Below, one piece after another: positions 5,308-64,000 of a stretch of DNA of 64,000 bases; position 1 is the first letter of the stretch, and each line of letters begins with the position of its first letter. The notes under the pieces were generated by a model. That model made no database searches. It was not told the DNA's origin and saw nothing but the letters and a program-made list of their open reading frames with translations. This DNA is from Macrostomum lignano (Eukaryota), in the NCBI GenBank assembly GCA_002269645.1, contig NIVC01003977.1, positions 2,880-66,879 on the forward strand, read 5' to 3'. The translations under genes were made by a program, and so were the position numbers.

Positions 5308-7038
5308 TTATAGTATCTGTGGGCGCAGGTAGCCGCCTTCTGCCTGGCCGCCGTCTGGGAAGCCGTCAATCAGCTGGGAGCCCAGCGGTTGCAGCTCATG
5401 GCCGGAGCCGCCAAGCGCCCCACTGCCGAACGAGGAGCCCAGGCCTCCGCCGCCGCCGCACCGGCTGGACGAGCTGAGGCAGGACTCGCTGCCTTCGTCC
5501 GCTTCACCCACTGACGATAGCGAAGCCTGCGCCGGCTGATGCTGCAGCTCCTCGGATTCGGCAACTGCGGCGTCGGCGGAGGCCAGCAGTTCGCCGGAGT
5601 CCGGGCAGCGCAGTCGATGGGCCCGGACCTCGCCAATCAGCTGACTGCGCCGGCTAATCAAGTGCGACACCGTGGACTCCAGCTGGGCATTGTCGGACTC
5701 CAGGCCGCGTACAGCCTCAGTGAGGCATTCGATGCGATCTTGGCGCTTCTTGCGGCACTTGGCTGCGGCCACTCGATTGCGCTCGCGGCGCTTCTCCCGG
5801 CGCTGCAACTCCTCCGGCTGGCTCTGGCGGAGAAGGGCAGGCGGACAGGCCAATGCGCGACACAAAGCACAAACATTTCAAACAAAATGCTAACCGTTTT
5901 TTCAGGACATTAGGTGGGTGCACACGGGGAACCAGCGTGGTAGCGCCATCATGGAGGCGCTTAGCCTGGCAAGGAGGCGCCATCGTGGGGGCGCCAGCAA
6001 CAGCAGTAAGTACTCTACCCTCTCCAGCCATTCATTCAGTAAGCACCCTACCCTCTCCAGCCATTCATTCAGTAAGCACCCTACCCTCTCCAGCCATTCA
6101 TTCAGCAAACACCCTACCCTCTCCAGCCATTCATTCAGCAAGCACCCTACCCTCTCCAGCTACTTTTTCAGCAAGCACCCTATCCTCAAAAGATCATTAA
6201 TTCAGTAAGCGCAGCTACCCTTTCTAATAATTAATTCAGCAAGCGATGCTCTCCAATGCTTTATGACGCTGCCCCAACCCAACCAATTAGGGATCAGGCT
6301 ATCCTAAGCAACTACAAAGTAAAATTAAAGCAATATAACCTAACCAACCTTAGCCGTTTTACTCCAAAATTTCCGACCTCCGCCAGTGCCGGTGGCCGCG
6401 CCGCTTCGCTGCTTCTTCGACGACCGACTTTTTGTTAAAGCTCCGCTGGTGCCGCCATCAACAGCTGCTAGCAGATTCGAATCTCCATCATCGCCAGTGT
6501 CATCAATCTCGTCTTCATCGTTATCGTCTTGATCAACATCTTCGTTGAAATGGGCGCCTAAAGGCTCTGACTGGACGGTAGGCGGCGGCGGAGGCTGCTG
6601 CTGATGGTGCTGCAGCAGGGGCTCGGTGAGCGGCAGCTGTAGCTGTTGCACATAGTGCTCTTGCGGATGCTGGAAATGATGCTGATGATGCTGATGATGC
6701 AAATGATGAGGCATATCAGCATAGCCTTGGCCGCCTAACAATGGGCCATTGGAAAGTACAATTGGCTTCAGTATGAGCCCCGGCTCAAGCGACTGCTGGT
6801 GCGGCTGGTGATGATGCGGCTGCTGCACCGGATGCTGCTGGTAGCAGCTAGCCGCCGATAAGTAGGCTCCGCCGCTGCTGCCGCCGCTGGCGTCGATGCA
6901 AAAATTTGCCGAATTGTATCCCGCATTAATATTGGTTGTCATGACAACGATTCCGCCGCTGCCGACGCCGGAACTGGGAACTGCTGCGGAGCCGCTGATT
7001 TCAGTTGGGCTTCGGGCAGCAGAGTCGGAGTAGATGAC
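5308..7038 (-). CDS. bZIP transcription factor, Fos/ATF3/JDP2-like (5' end uncertain)
   Basis: Exon 7038-6349 (acceptor TTTCAG; first in-frame ATG at 6942; donor AAG|GTTGGT) is spliced in phase 0 to exon 5823-5308. Basic region EKRRERNRVAAAKCRKKR, five heptad leucines, then HxxxC as in the Fos/ATF3 group. His/Gln-rich and acidic N-terminal region. Confidence 0.88.
6005..6245. repeat. 33-bp intronic tandem repeat (AGCACCCTACCCTCTCCAGCCATTCATTCAGYA)
   Basis: Visible tandem copies in the bZIP intron. Confidence 0.9.
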
Positions 7039-15729: not shown

Positions 15730-18700
15730 TTAAATTTCAAAGTACAGTTCGGAATCGCTGAACTGCAAGCCAACGCTGCCAGCTGAAACTCCTCTCTGCT
15801 CTCCAATGATGGCACCTCTGCCTCGGCCTCCGCGACCGCCCTGGCCTCGTCGACCGCCCTCCTGAGTGGACTCAACGTCTGCAACAGCTCGAGCTGAGGG
15901 GGCGACGCCTGCGCCGCCGAGTGTGGCGAGTTGGACCACGCCCGAGGTGGCGGCAGAGCACTGGCGCGAGGTCTGCGACGAGGTTGTTGGCGTGGTGTCC
16001 TCGCTACGCGGCCGGACCTGCATCCGGGGCCTGTTGAGTTTATGTTTCATGGTAACCAGTACTATCACCAGGATGAATCCGATGAGCAGGAGGCCGCCCA
16101 CCACCGAGCCGATGACCACTTCCATCAATGGGAAACTGCTTTCATTGCTTTCTCCAGTGTAGTACCTGTGTTGGGAAGTAAATTGTTTACACTAATAAAT
16201 AATCTGCCGAGCTCGTTGAGTTCACCAATTTCAACTCCTTAAGTCACTTATTTGAACACCCTGAGTCACTCATTTGAACTCCTCGAGTCACTGATTTGAA
16301 CTCCCTGAGTCAGAGTCACTGATTTGAACTCCCCGAGTCACTCATTTGAGCTCCCTGAGACACTCATTTGAGCTCCCTGAGTCACTCACTCATTTGAGCT
16401 CTGAGTCACTCATTTGAACTCCCTGAGTCACTGATTTTAACTCCCTGAGTCACTGATTTAAACTCCCTGAGTCACTGATTTGAACTCCCCGAGTCACTGA
16501 TTTGAACTCCCTGAGTCAGAGTCACTGATTTGAACTCCCCGAGTCACTCATTTGAACTCCCTGAGTCATTCACTCATTTGAGCTCCCTGAGTCACTCATT
16601 TGAACTCCCCGAGTCACTGGCTTTAACTCCCTGAGTCACTGATTTGAACTCGCCGAGTCATTGATTTGAACTGCCCGAGTCACTGATTTGAATTCCCTGA
16701 GTCACTCATTCGAGCTGCCTGAGTCACTCATTTGAACTCCTCGAGTCACTCATTTGAACTCCCTGAGTCAGTCACTGATTTGAACTCCCCGAGTCACTGG
16801 TTTGAACTCCCTGAGTCACTCATTTGATCTCCCTGAGTCACTCATTTGAGCTCCCTAAGTCACTCATTTGAGCTCCCTGAGTCACTCATTTGAGCTCCCT
16901 GAGTCACTCATTTGAGCTCCCTGAGTCACTCTTTTGAGCTCCTTGAGTCACTCATTTGAATTCCTGAGTCAATGAATCAAGGTCGCTACGGAAGTTAGCA
17001 TTTCTTATCGCTAAATAGCTTCTACTCACTCAACAGACGTGGCAGAATACTCAACTCCGTCGACTGTCACAACGAACGCACCGGAATTAACCTTCGTCTT
17101 AATCAGATTTAGTTTGCTGCTTGCATCCACTGAGGGAAAGATGATATTCAAGTTTTATTTTCATATTTTTGACAGCTGTCGTGTTTTTAATATACTACTT
17201 ATAGTAGTCAGTATAGTGCAACTCACTGCTTGGATCGGAATTCTCCCAATTTGCGATGACAGATCCGGGCTTCACCTCTATGACCGATATCTGATAGATT
17301 GAAATGCGAAACGCTTCCGCCAACGCCTTCTGCAGTGAGACTTTGAAATCCTTAATCAGAGCCTTGTCTACGAGCTGATAATAGTCCATCTTTTCAAACT
17401 TAATCGTGAATTTCACGGTTGGATCTGTGGAGAAAGTTCAGTTGTAGTTTGATTTGTATAATATAATAATGCTATCTAAAGCAGAACTTAGGGCTATATT
17501 GTGTTGAAAATTATAATAGAGAATAGTATTTTTGGCATAATTATTCCAGCAAAAAATCTTGATAATGCAGCTAAAATACATGTATTAAGCTTGTTTAAAA
17601 AGTTAGAACTCATACGGCTCGTACGACTTGAAAATGTGCACATGATAGAGGTTAAACCAAGACCAAGCTAAAAATGACTAAATAGGAGCGTATATCGACT
17701 GAATTGAGCGCAGAGTTAGCACGTCAGACATCGGCTACTGCAATGTTATACTTTTGTTATAATAATGCTCTGTTACTCTGCATGTGTTATAGTACTCTCG
17801 AGTTCAAACAAAAATGTTACAGTTCTACATCTATCTGATCTTGCAAATTGACTCTCACATTTTTCTTGCAAAGGTGTCGTCAGCTGCTGGCTCTTCTTCA
17901 TGGGATGAATCGAAACAGTCCTGAATTGAGCCTGAATTACTGATGCAGTTAGGAAAATAGTTGCTCGCCTATAGCGCCTAGCCAGCAATCTCATTTAAAT
18001 TTACAAAGAATTGCTTGTGAAAAAAGCTCAAAAGCTATTTTTCGTAAAGCGCAGAAGCTTTCCACGAAAGGAAAATGGATTTGAAAATAGAACCAGGCCA
18101 TTCGATTGCTTACTTGGAGTGGTTTCCATGGAAGACGGGGGAACTGTGGAGGCCGTTGTTGAAATGCTATTTTTAGCGCCACCGGTAGTAGAAGCAGAGC
18201 CCGCACCTGTGCTGGGAATTCTATCAATGGTAGTAGTGTCGCTGTCGCTTTTGCTTATGCCGATTTCTATTGTGCCTGACGAGGCTGTTTCAGCGATGCT
18301 GACTGTGCTGCCGACAGCTCCCTGCTGCCACGGAAATCCGGACAGAAGATCCAACACGGAGGACTGTCGCGGACAGACTAGACTGATGTGAACGCAGATA
18401 AGTTGGACACCGTCGCCAAATTCAACCTGAGCAGGTCTGGACTTAAAAGAGTCCGATAAGCAGGTGACTTGGAAGCCGTTACGCGTCACTGCATAAGAGG
18501 CGTCACTGGCATCGGGCTCTGCTGGGCACGCAACCGACAGGCACTCTGTCCAGCTCCTGTTCTGGCTTTGTATTTGTAGACTGCGCCAATTACCAGTTAG
18601 GTTGCACAATTCAGTATCCCTTGGCAGAACAGCGCTGCAATTTGAATCAGAAATGACACCGCAGCTACCAACGGACTTGTGCGAATGGTCCGGTCTTGAA

Positions 18701-20155
18701 GCGGAGCTTGATTCTGCGTCAGCCGAGCAAAACATTGAATTCGACTGCGATGGCCCCGAAGTTGGACAGCTCCACGAGAACCAACAACCGGCGCGACGGC
18801 CCCAAGAAAATCGATCGGCAAGGGAATAGTTGACGGTGTACCATCCCGAATCCTCAAGAAGCGCCAGGGTGCCCTCTCCAGACAGGAAACGCCAGTTGAA
18901 ACGGGCTGATGAGAGAACAGACGGAAACATAAAAACCGGATGCCACGCGCCAGAATTTGTCCCTGGCGCCAGCGGCACGCCGATACTACAGTTGAAATGC
19001 CGCTCAGCAAAGCTCTGGACTGACGCAGTTCGCACGAATGAGATGCCATTCTGCCTGACAAGTATGTCACGCTCTTGCAGAGTCTCCCAAGTGCCCAGCT
19101 CAGAAGGCGACGACTTCATCAATCTTTGAAATTCGGTCATCAGATTTCGAGAAAATCCCAGCATTCGAACTAATCCGGCCAAAATCTGTTGCAAAAGTCG
19201 GCCAGACCGAGAGGCCAGCTCAGAGTCAATCAGTCGAGGACACACGCGCAGAAGTCCCGCCACTGGCCGCCGGACCATCCATTGTTGCGAGCACTCTGTC
19301 CCTGTTATATCTCGAGCCTGCCAATAGTGAAGATGCAAACTTGATTACCGGATCAAGCCGACTCAGAATGTAAAGAATTGGATGCTGAAGACACAATAAC
19401 CAAGCCAACTCACAGATTCCGCACTGCAGAAGCTGCTCTGTTGGGTAGCAACAAAGAGAATGAAATTTGCGCCTGCTTCACCACCCGAACCAGCTGGATT
19501 AATAATCACTTTTGAGCTGTTGTAGACGGCAATTTCCGAGAGATATTCCTGAGGTATCTGTTGACCGATGTCGATAATGATCATTAAACTTCGGAACGAA
19601 AATACTTTGTCCATATTTAGTAACAAATTCAAGATCAGGTACACAAATGACCTACAGTTATGCATTAGCTCACTTACACGAAAAGTGTCGTCTGCTGAGC
19701 AGACCTCGCCTGTACTCATGTAGGTCTCATTTAACAGGCTGCACCTGTTACTTTCCATCCATTGTGAACAATAGGAGCGAGATCTGTTTAGCCGTATTGC
19801 TTGTCCAGGATTTAAATCGATTACTGAAATTATCGATCGATACTGATTGGCTCGGTGGGCTCCAAGTTATCAAAGGAATTCAATAAATCAATGGCCTGAG
19901 TTACAAACCTCTCAGCAAAGCTTCAAGCCGGCTTGCTGCCACTCGGACGGTTTCCCTGAGCAGGTAATCCTGCTCACTACTAAGCCCAGCATTGTCGAAG
20001 ACTTTCTGAATGCTCAGCTGAGGCCAGTTGGCATCCGTCAGAGGCTTCGCCCATCGCACGCAGCAGCACAGGCACAGCAGTAGCAGTTGCAGAGCCACAC
20101 ATCGCGACACCGGCAGCAGTGGCAGCAGCGACGGTGTCGACAGCCTGACGGCCAT
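15730..20155 (-). CDS. Leishmanolysin/invadolysin (peptidase M8)-like type I membrane protein, predicted catalytically inactive, with S/T stalk, SEA-like domain and TM helix; 824 aa
   Basis: Seven exons, all GT-AG and phase-compatible: 20155-19909, 19823-19678, 19557-19414, 19317-18114, 17424-17227, 17129-17030, 16165-15730 (2475 nt). Signal peptide MAVRL...LLLLCLCCC. M8 motifs IPQEYL, ANFILFV, RRPVAG..VCP, LGFS, RHFNC and TLALLEDSGWYTVNYSLADRFSWGRRAGC. SEA-like EVKPGSVI; TM VVIGSVVGGLLLIGFILVIVLV. Confidence 0.85.
16240..16975. repeat. 22-bp intronic minisatellite (GAGTCACTCATTTGAACTCCCT)n
   Basis: Visible array in the last intron of the M8-like gene. Confidence 0.95.
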
Positions 20156-21535: not shown

Positions 21536-23353
21536 TGTAACGCGCGGTATTTGGCAGTGTGAAAAAATCAACGAAAGCCCCGTGGGGCAGTGATGGCTAT
21601 ATTTATGCGAGTCAACGATGTACATAAAGAGAGCGAACGTACATTAAAATTCTTCAGCAAAATATTTGTCAATACGATACCAGTTCAATGACTGCCAATA
21701 AGGCAAGGAATAAAACCATTACATTTCTCTCCCCCACGAAACAAGAAAAAAACCGGAGGGAATTAAAACAGTAAACACGTCAGCAATATGAATCGTAAAA
21801 TTGAAACGCAGAACCTTTTAAAAAGCATGCATTCACGGTCTCTGACAGTCCATCACTCTCAGATCACTAAGTGCTCACACCAAAGAAGTCCGGAGGCCGT
21901 CGCTCCCGCTCTGGGTACCGCCGCTCGGCCTGGCTGGGCTCCGGTGCGAACTGGTGGGTCAGCGGCTGCTGGCGGAGCTGGACAGAGTCGGGCTGGGCTG
22001 CGAACCGCCTGCGCAGCCGGTTCACGTGCACCCAGCGGACCGGCCGGCTGCCGAAGGCGCGGCGGATGCACACCGAGTGGCCGCGCTGCTCAAGCACCGT
22101 CCAGCCCGCGGCTCCCAGTAGGGCGCCAGCTTCGAGCGCCGCGTCTCGATGCTGAGCAGCACCTCGGCGCCTTGCGGGAACTGCGGCAGGTCCGTAGCCT
22201 TCTTGTCGTGAGCCGCCTTCTGCTGCTGCCCGGCGGCTACCAGGTTCTCCTCGACGAACTCGCGGATCCGGGCCAGCCGCCGCTCCAGCTGTGCCGAGTA
22301 GGTGCCGATGTCGAACTGCCGCTCGCTGCTCTGAAACTGCGGCGGGAGCTGCGGGTCGCGGCCGGTCATCACCGTCATCGGCGCCACCTTGGTTGAGCTG
22401 TGGACCCTGGAGTTGTAGGACAGGACCACCAGCGGCAGCTGCTCCTCCCAGCTGGACTCGGTCTCGGCGAACAGCCTCAGCAGTTGCAGCAGAGACTTGT
22501 TGCCGCGCTTCAGTCCATTTCCCTGCGGATGATACGGTGTGGTGCGCGTCTTTCTGATGCCCAGAGCTCGCAGCGTCTCCTGGAACAGCTCGCTCTCGAA
22601 GTTCACGCCCTGGTCCGAGTGGATGATGGACGGGACTCCGAGCAGGGAGAAGACCTTCACTGCAGCGTCCGCAATGGTCTTGGCGGTCTGATCTGGCATC
22701 GGCACGGCGGTCAGGAACTTGGAGAACTGGTCCTGCATCACCAGTAGGTAGCTGTTGCCTCGGTCTGATGTCGGCACCTTCAGCACATCGATCGCCACCG
22801 TCTGCCAGGGCTTGCCGATCGGCATCTCACCGAGTGGGGCTGCGGGCCGGTGCTGCGCCTTTTTCAGCTGGCAGGTCTGGCACTCCTGGCAGAAACTCAC
22901 CACGTCGCTCTGCACCCCAGGCCAGTACGCGGTCTGCTTCAGCGTGTTGGCCATTTTCTCCGGTCCGAAGTGGCCGCCGATGCCCTCGTGAAAGTCAGTG
23001 AGGAACTGGCGCCGCAGCGACTCCGGAATCACAGGCACCTTCCTCGGTCCCGCAGCGTCGTTGAAGGCGCAACAGAGAAGGCCGTCTTAAATCCGCAACT
23101 TCCGCCAGATGCGTTTGCGGTTGCCGCATCTCTCGGTTGGACACCTGCGGTTGCCGCATCTCTCGGTTGGACACCTGCGGCTGCAGCTCTGTTGCCGAGG
23201 CTCCAAGCGTCTCGCAATGGCCCTCGTGCATCTTCGACAGGCCGACCGCCTCCACGTTGTCGACGCCCTTTGTGTACTTGATGGTGAAGGTGATTTCCAA
23301 TTCCAATAATATTGGCAATAACTGCCAATAAGGCAAGGAATAAAACCATTACA
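21536..23353 (-). mobile_element. Internally deleted Gypsy LTR retrotransposon (RNase H end + integrase, PPT, 3' LTR, 5' LTR stub)
   Basis: Integrase ORF 23038-22022 (HHCC zinc finger; TVAID, IHSDQG and YHPQGNG motifs; catalytic E apparently lost) continues by frameshift to 21867. RNase H-end motif FTIKYTKGVDNVEA. PPT GGGGGAGAGAAA (21735-21724) directly precedes TGTAATGG at 21723. An identical 33-bp LTR start lies at 23353-23321. Candidate LTR end at 21536 with 4-bp TSD TGTA. Confidence 0.85.
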
Positions 23354-29003: not shown

Positions 29004-39822
<10,819 letters not shown>

Positions 39823-47673: not shown

Positions 47674-55393
<7,720 letters not shown>

Positions 55394-62282: not shown

Positions 62283-64000
62283 TGTGATGCTCTGCTGGCA
62301 ACTCTAGTGCTTGATGAATAACGAAGCTCGTATCTTGCTTTGCTTGTTTATTTGGCTTTAGGACCACATTAATGCTAGCGGGGCTTGTAACAAGATTATG
62401 AAACTAGGACACTTATATATTAGGAAGGGATGAGGGAGGCGGCATTTGGGCGCAGCGGCCATAGACTATTGCACGAGCGTATGTCATGTCTCCCTCCAGA
62501 AGGAAAGAGTTGAACTATGTCTCCGAACAATGTAAACTTTATGTTAGGAACTCAACAGATAACTAATTCAAATCCAGCGTGTCAGGTTTCATTTTGGTTA
62601 CTCGTAATGTGTAGCTAATGCGTTTTTTTAGCAGTCATGAGGAGTAGCGGTCTGGTTGGCGACGCATCCGGGTGCTACGGCGAATTCCACCTGCTTCTTG
62701 TTCTTGCGCGCCTTGGGTCGAATTGTCGCTGGGGTTCCCTGCCTCCGTGTTTGCGGGATCTCCTGCCATTGATTCTTCATCGTCGTGTGGCAGTGGAGCA
62801 AGTTGGTTGTCGCTTGCCAAACGCAGTTCGCTCCCGTCCAACACGAAGGCCGTGTTGCGGCCTCGGTTCATCACGTATTCGACAGTGGAGGGTGGAACAT
62901 CCAAAGTTGGCTGATCCAGAACGCGCTCGCCTTGGTTGAACGTGGAGACTACAGGAGCGCGTAGTTGGCGTCCGAAAACAATCTCAGCTGGCGTCTTGCC
63001 CCTACACGTGGATGAGTTTCGGTGATGAAACAGCAATCGCTGTAGATAGGGAACAAATTCAGCGTGGGTGGTTCGTTCGTTCCAGGCCCGCAGAGCTCGT
63101 TTGACTGTCTGGACTGCTCGCTCAGCCGATCCATTGGCCTGGGGATAATAAGTTGGGGATTCCATCTTCTTTATGCCATTTTGGTGCAGCCAGCTTCTCA
63201 GTGAATCGCTGACGAACTCCGGAGCATTGTCCGAAACTAAAAGTTCAGGCACACCAAAGCGTGTGAAAACATTTCTGAGGCATTTAATGATCTGATCTGT
63301 GGATCGATCTTTACAGGGAAAGGCCTCGATCCAACCAGAGTGAGAGTCGACTGCTATCAGGATGTTTCCAACATTCTTTACGTACGCCCAGTCAACGTGA
63401 AGCTTTTGAAACGGGTATTCAGTCGATGGCCAGGTGTCTCTGGTCTTCCCCAATCTGGGCCGCAGCCTGTTGCATACATCACACTGGCTGACAAATCGCT
63501 CGATGTCAGCGCGCATTCCAGGCCACCAGCAGGACAAGCTCATGAAGTTGAGTGTCGCCAGAGACCCAGAGTGAGTGTCATGCGCTGCACGAAAAGCTTC
63601 TTTCCGCAGTCTTGGCGGAATGTAGACCTGGCGACCCTTGAACAGTAAGCCGTCCTCGATAGTTAGGCATTGCGATACGGCCTGGAATGGTTTCTCAGCC
63701 TGAGAACAGCCAGCCCAGTTTCCCGAGCGAATTCGGTGCATCACTTTTTTTATGAGCTCATCCAACTCTAGCTCTGCGGCAACCCGGTTCTTGGAATGAC
63801 AGACGGCTCGAAGGCAACGCAATCAATGGCTTCGCAGACTTCCGTCGAATCGTTAGATGAGTCAGTGAAGCGTAGGCGAAAAGCGCATCGGCATGTGGAA
63901 TTCTTCTCTCCTGGTATATAGCGTATGGTGTAGTCAAGGTGCATCATCGCGAGTGCCCATCTGCTAATGCGAGCGGAGGTGTTCAGCGGCACCCGCGAGA
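62283..64000 (-). mobile_element. Gypsy LTR retrotransposon 3' part (RNase H end, integrase, putative 3' LTR), running off the window
   Basis: RNase H-end RWALAMMHLDYTIRYIPG (63992-63768) is frameshifted into integrase ORF 63822-62635 (H..H..C..C; LHVDW, VSDNAPEF and YPQANGSAER, so the DDE triad is intact). A purine tract GGAGGGAGA at ~62.49 kb and a TATA-containing ~200-bp segment ending in CA at 62283 are a tentative LTR. Confidence 0.9.

Follow-up and report, generated by a model that had tools for sequence, protein, structure and literature searches.

We describe here a gene of Macrostomum lignano, situated on the minus strand between positions 15730 and 20155 of a 64,000-nucleotide stretch of DNA (hereafter the window), whose product belongs to the CIROP/LMLN2 branch of the M8 metzincins and has lost the residues required for catalysis. 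The window is identical to contig NIVC01003977.1 of the assembly Mlig_3_7, of which it covers positions 2,880 to 66,879 of the forward strand, and the product is predicted to be a type I membrane glycoprotein encoded by one of three near-identical copies in the genome. We consider it most likely, with a probability of roughly 0.6, that this gene is maintained as a non-cutting pseudoprotease acting as a surface binding protein, because its open reading frame (ORF) has been kept, the gene is transcribed according to its RNA-seq-derived model, and the genomic copies differ from each other mostly synonymously.

The M8 domain of the product is recovered by the Pfam profile Peptidase_M8 (PF01457) at residues 155-405, scoring 38.5 bits (E 8e-10) where the cut-off is 21, and Leishmania GP63 (1LML), the sole solved relative, is matched at E 2.8e-6. 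Alignments with 7, 17 and 149 relatives show that the positions of the zinc-binding H-E-x-x-H motif are occupied by A226-G227-L-V-R230, lying within the stretch AGLVRMLGFS (19150-19179) where the family has HExxHxLGFS. In the same alignments the position of the third zinc-binding His is taken by A303 in the sequence NSGAWHPV (18934-18957; SHW in the family) and that of the Met-turn Met by L314 in SVLS (18910-18921; S-I/L-M in the family), while the structural motifs RHFNC, TLALLEDSGWY and WGRRAGC are retained. These substitutions and retained motifs had been pointed out in the initial annotation of the window, made from its letters without database searches, and both they and its assignment of the protein to the M8 peptidases, for which it had proposed the Pfam comparison as a check, stand up to the alignments and profile search.

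The rarity of such a configuration was gauged from the best 150 of 927 relatives (E<=1e-3) collected when 1.84 billion representatives were searched exhaustively with phmmer. The residues H, E, H and H are present at the ligand and Glu positions in 145-147 of these 150 proteins and the Met-turn Met in 142; only three other M8 proteins among them deviate at a zinc-ligand or catalytic Glu position. The Cys-switch propeptide motif (C-x-[HFY]-D) is likewise found in none of the five M. lignano sequences; the protein has 18 cysteines, an even number. Given the loss of both His residues and the Glu of HExxH, of the third His and of the Met-turn Met, the protein can neither bind the catalytic zinc nor hydrolyse peptide bonds. 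It therefore does not belong among the active M8 enzymes, with HExxH, third His, Met-turn and Cys-switch all missing, and the alignments show an ectodomain that is unable to coordinate the catalytic zinc and is without a general base or a latency propeptide. The dead motif is common to all M. lignano copies, and hence the loss of catalysis is older than the duplication that gave rise to them.

To which branch of the M8 peptidases the protein belongs is indicated by several comparisons. Its best non-self matches, with E-values from 1e-32 to 1e-20, go by the names "ciliated left-right organizer metallopeptidase(-like)" or "leishmanolysin-like peptidase 2". The animals represented are a nemertean, molluscs, a spider, amphioxus, sea urchins, a tunicate and cats, and unnamed annelid and brachiopod proteins also occur among these matches. 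Two custom hidden Markov models (HMMs), one made from named CIROP and the other from named LMLN (invadolysin) sequences, give the M8 domain 187 and 68 bits, respectively, and the CIROP HMM also matches the C-terminal region, with 53 bits. A neighbor-joining tree based on 423 columns places the protein within the CIROP clade, to the exclusion of LMLN, in 197 of 200 bootstraps. Finally, a profile of the domain preceding the membrane, which is found in 38 other family proteins, matches the M. lignano protein with 90.6 bits. The earlier description of the protein as invadolysin/leishmanolysin-like, echoed by the automatic name "leishmanolysin-like peptidase" in GenBank and UniProt, thus needs to be narrowed: the M8 fold is correctly recognized, and the closest branch is CIROP.

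CIROP has been described as a metzincin with a signal peptide, a propeptide, a catalytic domain and, at the C-terminus, a membrane-spanning domain (bioRxiv 10.1101/2024.10.13.618030; PMC9816872). With CIROP, formerly LMLN2, the M. lignano protein shares the signal peptide, the M8 domain, a Ser/Thr-rich linker, a juxtamembrane domain of about 110 residues, a single transmembrane helix and a tail. The initial annotation did not recognize this architecture from any described protein and had held that finding it in an already described family would count against its proposal; the architecture is in fact the standard one of CIROP/LMLN2, so that the gene is a member of a known family and its domain arrangement not new. 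What sets the protein apart within this family is its dead active site. Both HExxHxxGF and SHW are kept in 37 of the 38 collected proteins from other species that carry the CIROP juxtamembrane domain, the sole exception being a 250-residue fragment, so that all 37 full-length members keep them. Most of these family members also have a Cys-switch-type motif, and the relatives carry a propeptide with a C-x-H-D motif that the M. lignano protein does not have; all three motifs are missing in each of the five M. lignano sequences (5/5). The tail also differs, being long and Arg/Gly-rich in M. lignano and short in the family.

The gene model accounts for the whole product. Seven exons on the minus strand with canonical AG/GT boundaries yield a 2475-nucleotide ORF of 824 codons for amino acids, in agreement with what had been read from the sequence initially. 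Exon 1 (19909-20155) contains the start codon (20155-20153) and encodes the N-terminal hydrophobic signal sequence (residues 1-36); exon 2 (19678-19823), which is the same in the GenBank model, encodes the N-terminal portion of the M8 domain, and exon 3 (19414-19557) a segment beginning IPQEYL. An alternative acceptor for exon 3 lies 9 nucleotides downstream, at 19548, and would give a product of 821 residues, three fewer. Exon 4 (18114-19317), at 1204 nucleotides, comprises the core of the M8 domain, its Cys-rich C-terminal part and the Ser/Thr-rich stalk (18114-18318). Exons 5 (17227-17424) and 6 (17030-17129) encode the first and second halves of the juxtamembrane alpha/beta domain, the former including the KPGSV hairpin, and exon 7 (15730-16165) the end of this domain, the transmembrane helix (16048-16119) and an Arg/Gly-rich cytoplasmic tail ending in YFEI, followed by the stop codon (15732-15730). 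No HExxH was found in any of the six frames between 15000 and 21000 of the window, and the dead motif is contained in one exon, exon 4, with conserved M8 motifs on either side; a missed exon restoring the HExxH, which by the initial annotation's own account would have counted against its proposal, is thereby ruled out. An upstream extension of the ORF bearing a propeptide is similarly ruled out by an in-frame TGA immediately 5' of the ATG and by the N-terminus already being a hydrophobic signal sequence. A tblastn search with the product recovers one copy only in the window, which rules out tandem paralogs there.

The gene is already annotated in GenBank as BOX15_Mlig009836g3 (PAA49098.1, 851 residues), a model that consists of the seven exons together with an optional 81-nucleotide in-frame exon (17859-17939; 27 residues) between exons 4 and 5; the window translated with this exon matches PAA49098.1 exactly. 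The UniProt entry A0A1I8IE51, from a sister copy in an older assembly, has the seven-exon structure without it, and the 81-nucleotide exon may be a cassette of the stalk that is subject to alternative splicing. The GenBank models of Mlig_3_7 go back to transcripts assembled from RNA-seq (StringTie/TACO, TransDecoder), and a common prefix in Mlig gene identifiers denotes transcripts at least 95% identical (PMC5730564). Since the models derive from RNA-seq, both the transcription and the splice pattern of the gene are indirectly supported by experiment (PMC5730564). Intron 6 contains a non-coding minisatellite (16228-16971) of about 33 copies of the 22-nucleotide consensus ATTTGAACTCCCTGAGTCACTC with 82% matches, and its length varies by about 183 alignment columns among the three genomic copies.

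C-terminal to the M8 domain, the stalk (residues 513-580) is 43% Ser/Thr and Cys-free. To call it a mucin stalk, as was done initially, is generous: the composition agrees with the label, and the segment is short and lacks tandem repeats. The single transmembrane helix (residues 696-719; Kyte-Doolittle hydropathy 2.96) and the cytoplasmic tail, both of which had been predicted from the letters alone, are readily recognized; the tail comprises 105 residues, of which 28% are Gly or Arg, with an RGG-like run. Part of this Arg/Gly-rich run, GGRRGQGGRGGRGRG, is encoded by an 18-nucleotide direct repeat in two copies within exon 7 (15825-15860). Many tails in the CIROP family end in a manner resembling PDZ ligands, with a hydrophobic last residue (YFEI in M. 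lignano; SSV, VHI, VLV, FVI, TYI, FPV, TSV and REV elsewhere), and this putative PDZ-binding C-terminus we regard as a lead only.

The domain between stalk and membrane was modeled with AlphaFold2 from 22 family sequences (residues 576-689 in the 824-residue numbering), giving a predicted local distance difference test (pLDDT) value of 87 and a predicted template modeling score of 0.79. The model has a beta-alpha-alpha-beta-beta-alpha-beta-beta topology, with the residues P-G-S-V at the hairpin between the second and third strands. A Foldseek search of the PDB with this model gave weak matches (best E 2.6e-3), of which the top ones were the membrane-proximal C-domains of EpCAM and Trop2, with template modeling (TM) scores of 0.55-0.58; lower matches included nucleotidyl cyclase-type domains (GGDEF, guanylyl cyclase), the ectodomains of SorCS2 and of IA-2 (TM score about 0.5) and a chain of the dystrophin-glycoprotein complex, and there were no classical SEA structures among the top 50. 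The Pfam SEA profile (PF01390) has no match at E<=10 to the domain alone, to the whole protein or to any of 23 family members. A sequence search of the PDB with the C-terminal domain yielded no SEA relationship, and one with the juxtamembrane family profile returned only chance-level matches to DEK and BRX1 and no SEA. In its predicted structure the domain shares with the SEA type, the EpCAM/Trop2 C-domain and the IA-2 ectodomain a beta-alpha-beta-beta-alpha-beta topology next to the membrane and a Gly-Ser beta-hairpin; it differs from SEA-type domains in an extra C-terminal strand, in the missing Pfam match and in the weak Foldseek E-values. We conclude from the model that this domain, which is conserved throughout the CIROP family, probably has an alpha/beta fold of the SEA-like class. 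The designation SEA-like, which was used initially, is thus supported by the predicted structure at the level of the fold class only and not as a Pfam SEA domain. The juxtamembrane domain appears to be without a Pfam model of its own; six of the 23 family members show weak similarity to PF23398, the FAZ1 conserved domain (best E 3.3e-4), and a single one to Receptor_IA-2 (E 0.059).

If the gene is indeed maintained as a pseudoprotease, the former substrate cleft of the ectodomain would bind an extracellular partner without cutting it, and the cytoplasmic tail would couple this binding to intracellular scaffolds, a mode of action that may be likened to that of the dead metzincins ADAM22 and ADAM23 as receptors. 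The function as a receptor, adhesion protein or decoy that the initial annotation put forward is a putative one.

The chief evidence for maintenance comes from the three copies of Mlig009836 in the assembly, which are 97-99% identical including introns and flanks, as fits the known duplications of the sequenced M. lignano line (PMC5730564). The ORF is intact in two of the three, with copy g2 encoding 825 residues. Outside a short rewritten patch, 7 non-synonymous and 10 synonymous substitutions separate g3 (the copy in the window) from g2, which corresponds to a non-synonymous rate (dN) of 0.0038, a synonymous rate (dS) of 0.0168 and a dN/dS of 0.23; were the copies evolving neutrally, as small a number of non-synonymous changes would arise with a probability of 0.0028 (binomial). 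This argues for purifying selection and against a decaying pseudogene, with the provision that the events are few and the time scale short. The initial annotation had listed a decaying pseudogene, unexpressed and with dN/dS near 1, among the things that would refute it; the intact ORF, the dN/dS and the transcript-derived annotation all speak against such a pseudogene.

A number of observations nevertheless weigh against maintenance as a surface binding protein. Copy g1 is frameshifted by a one-nucleotide deletion at codon 216 (equivalent to position 19208 of the window), and its GenBank model is shortened to 622 residues and begins with MLGFS. Copy g3 itself has a compensated frameshift, in which first two nucleotides and then, 26 nucleotides further, one nucleotide are missing relative to g1 and g2; as a result nine residues that follow the Met-turn position and precede TLALLEDSGWY are rewritten (18878-18904; found in this copy only) before the frame is restored. 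On the CIROP family profile this region scores 81.8 bits in the g2 reading, which keeps a conserved Asp, versus 68.2 bits in that of g3, and because the g2 frame fits the profile better, the g3 patch is derived or mis-assembled. The indels of g1 and g3 possibly reflect some relaxation of constraint or else errors of assembly. The selection test is based on just 17 substitutions between very recent copies. In the neighbor-joining tree the M. lignano branch has about twice the length of those of its relatives, the Cys-rich C-terminal half of the M8 domain aligns poorly with the family, and a full-length AlphaFold2 model from a 16-sequence alignment has a pLDDT of 40.6, too poor for the preservation of the cleft to be read from it. 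The protein collections searched contain no ortholog from another species and none at 50-90% identity. Literature searches for Mlig009836, for leishmanolysin with Macrostomum and for leishmanolysin with pseudoprotease found nothing, and the gene identifier was not found in the supplements of M. lignano expression papers; neither these nor the literature yielded a partner, expression site or phenotype for the gene.

Several of these points are what would be expected if the gene were instead on its way to becoming a pseudogene, with constraint relaxed after the loss of catalysis, no function of its own, and intact ORFs only by virtue of the duplicates being young. We regard this as clearly the less probable account, though one with an appreciable chance of being right. 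The long branch, an identity of only 20-30% to any relative, the loss of the propeptide and of two conserved cysteines (a disulfide pair) after the active-site motif, the frameshift in g1, the poorer fit of the g3 patch and the failure to find an ortholog elsewhere would all follow from decay. However, an ORF of 824 residues spread over 7-8 exons with every splice site intact is unlikely to have lasted through the implied divergence without selection, and the 18 cysteines, the structural motifs and the juxtamembrane domain, which still attains some 90 bits on the family profile, have been kept. The dN/dS and its associated probability (P=0.003) also speak against decay, as do the restoration of the frame in g3 26 nucleotides past the first indel and the derivation of the gene models from transcripts, and the indels of g1 and g3 may themselves be errors of long-read assembly.

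It is rather improbable that the dead gene is the only CIROP-family gene of M. lignano, in which case the ortholog itself and not a spare paralog would have lost catalysis while being maintained as a ciliary or cell-surface receptor. Were this so, CIROP proteins would have an ancestral protease-independent function in binding or scaffolding, which would bear on what CIROP does downstream of MMP21 on the cilia of the left-right organizer.

A different function for the dead ectodomain would follow if the juxtamembrane domain cleaved itself in the manner of SEA domains, or were cut by another protease, with the freed ectodomain sequestering substrates or inhibitors of active M8 enzymes or matrix metalloproteinases (MMPs). 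The confidently modeled domain has a Gly-Ser turn (KPG-SVIANW) at its beta2-beta3 hairpin, and G-S-[VI]-x-[VF] occurs there in about 10 of the 23 family members, once as GSVVV; this hairpin resembles the G/SVVV sequence at which SEA domains, that of MUC1 for example, undergo autoproteolysis. The fold class, too, is that of juxtamembrane domains in shed proteins, namely EpCAM/Trop2 and the IA-2 ectodomain. We nonetheless hold a shed decoy or regulator to be quite unlikely: neither the M. lignano protein nor any of the 23 family members has a Pfam SEA match, the structural matches are weak (TM scores 0.5-0.58) and without classical SEA domains among the top 50, and the cleavage itself is putative. 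That the protein is still a hydrolase with a non-canonical site, for which one might invoke only a His two residues past the lost third ligand (AWH) together with the Arg at the position of the second His, is scarcely credible, given that none of the five catalytic and structural positions, each conserved to at least 95% in the 150 relatives, retains its residue and that a Glu-to-Gly change at the equivalent Glu is by itself sufficient to abolish the activity of SmCI-1, an invadolysin of the flatworm S. mansoni (PMC9928134).

The genomic surroundings of the gene include ORFs with Integrase_H2C2 and rve domains at 22022-23038 and 62635-63822, both on the minus strand, which are remnants of integrases of long terminal repeat retrotransposons. 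The first of these lies about 1.9 kb upstream of the start codon of the M8 gene, and copy g2 shares it, in part at least (up to position 22155 of the window). The gene neighbors are an exon of a bZIP transcription factor (5308-5865, minus strand), a fragment of a protein kinase (32231-33118, plus strand) and a fragment of a Na+/H+ exchanger (54419-55393, plus strand), and they have no evident functional tie to the M8 gene.

The preferred reading of the gene as a maintained pseudoprotease derives its interest from the family to which the gene belongs. Vertebrate CIROP is found on the cilia of the left-right organizer, where it acts downstream of MMP21 (bioRxiv 10.1101/2024.10.13.618030), and it is a recently recognized human disease gene that is mutated in heterotaxy (bioRxiv 10.1101/2024.10.13.618030; PMC9816872). 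Within the family, metallopeptidase activity, ciliary localization and a part in left-right patterning are known from vertebrates only. A dead yet apparently maintained member would amount to a natural experiment, in that any function it has must be independent of proteolysis, and from the partners of the M. lignano protein one could gain a clue to those of the CIROP ectodomain; M. lignano is amenable to transgenesis and RNA interference (PMC5730564). With the gene already in GenBank and UniProt, its architecture known and the functional evidence modest, the significance of the finding is for specialists.

Among known systems, leishmanolysin GP63 and invadolysin (LMLN) share with the M. lignano protein the M8 homology and the motifs RP.AG, HFNC, TLAL.EDSGWY and WG..GC. 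LMLN is more distant from it than CIROP both by HMM scores and in the tree; the LMLN sequences aligned lack the juxtamembrane domain and the transmembrane helix with tail, and the active site of GP63/LMLN is intact. The three other M8 homologs with dead or altered sites are a protein of the sponge Amphimedon (P0147, XP_019855035.1) with QE..R, an unnamed eukaryotic protein (P0107) with KQ..T, and one from the alga Mesotaenium (P0036) with HG..H, in which the Glu alone is lost. As these fall outside the CIROP clade, they represent independent losses, and M8 pseudoenzymes have therefore arisen several times. With the M. lignano gene, the membrane-anchored metzincin pseudoproteases, for which the known case is ADAM22/23, would gain a representative in the M8 family. 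ADAM22 is a catalytically inactive metzincin that serves as a membrane receptor (PMC5906670), and ADAM22, ADAM23 and ADAM11 offer a functional analogy as type I proteins with a metalloprotease-like domain devoid of catalytic residues that bind a ligand and cytoplasmic scaffolds (PMC5906670). They differ in belonging to the M12B and not the M8 family and in their accessory domains, and the homology that we claim between them and the M. lignano protein is confined to the metzincin core.

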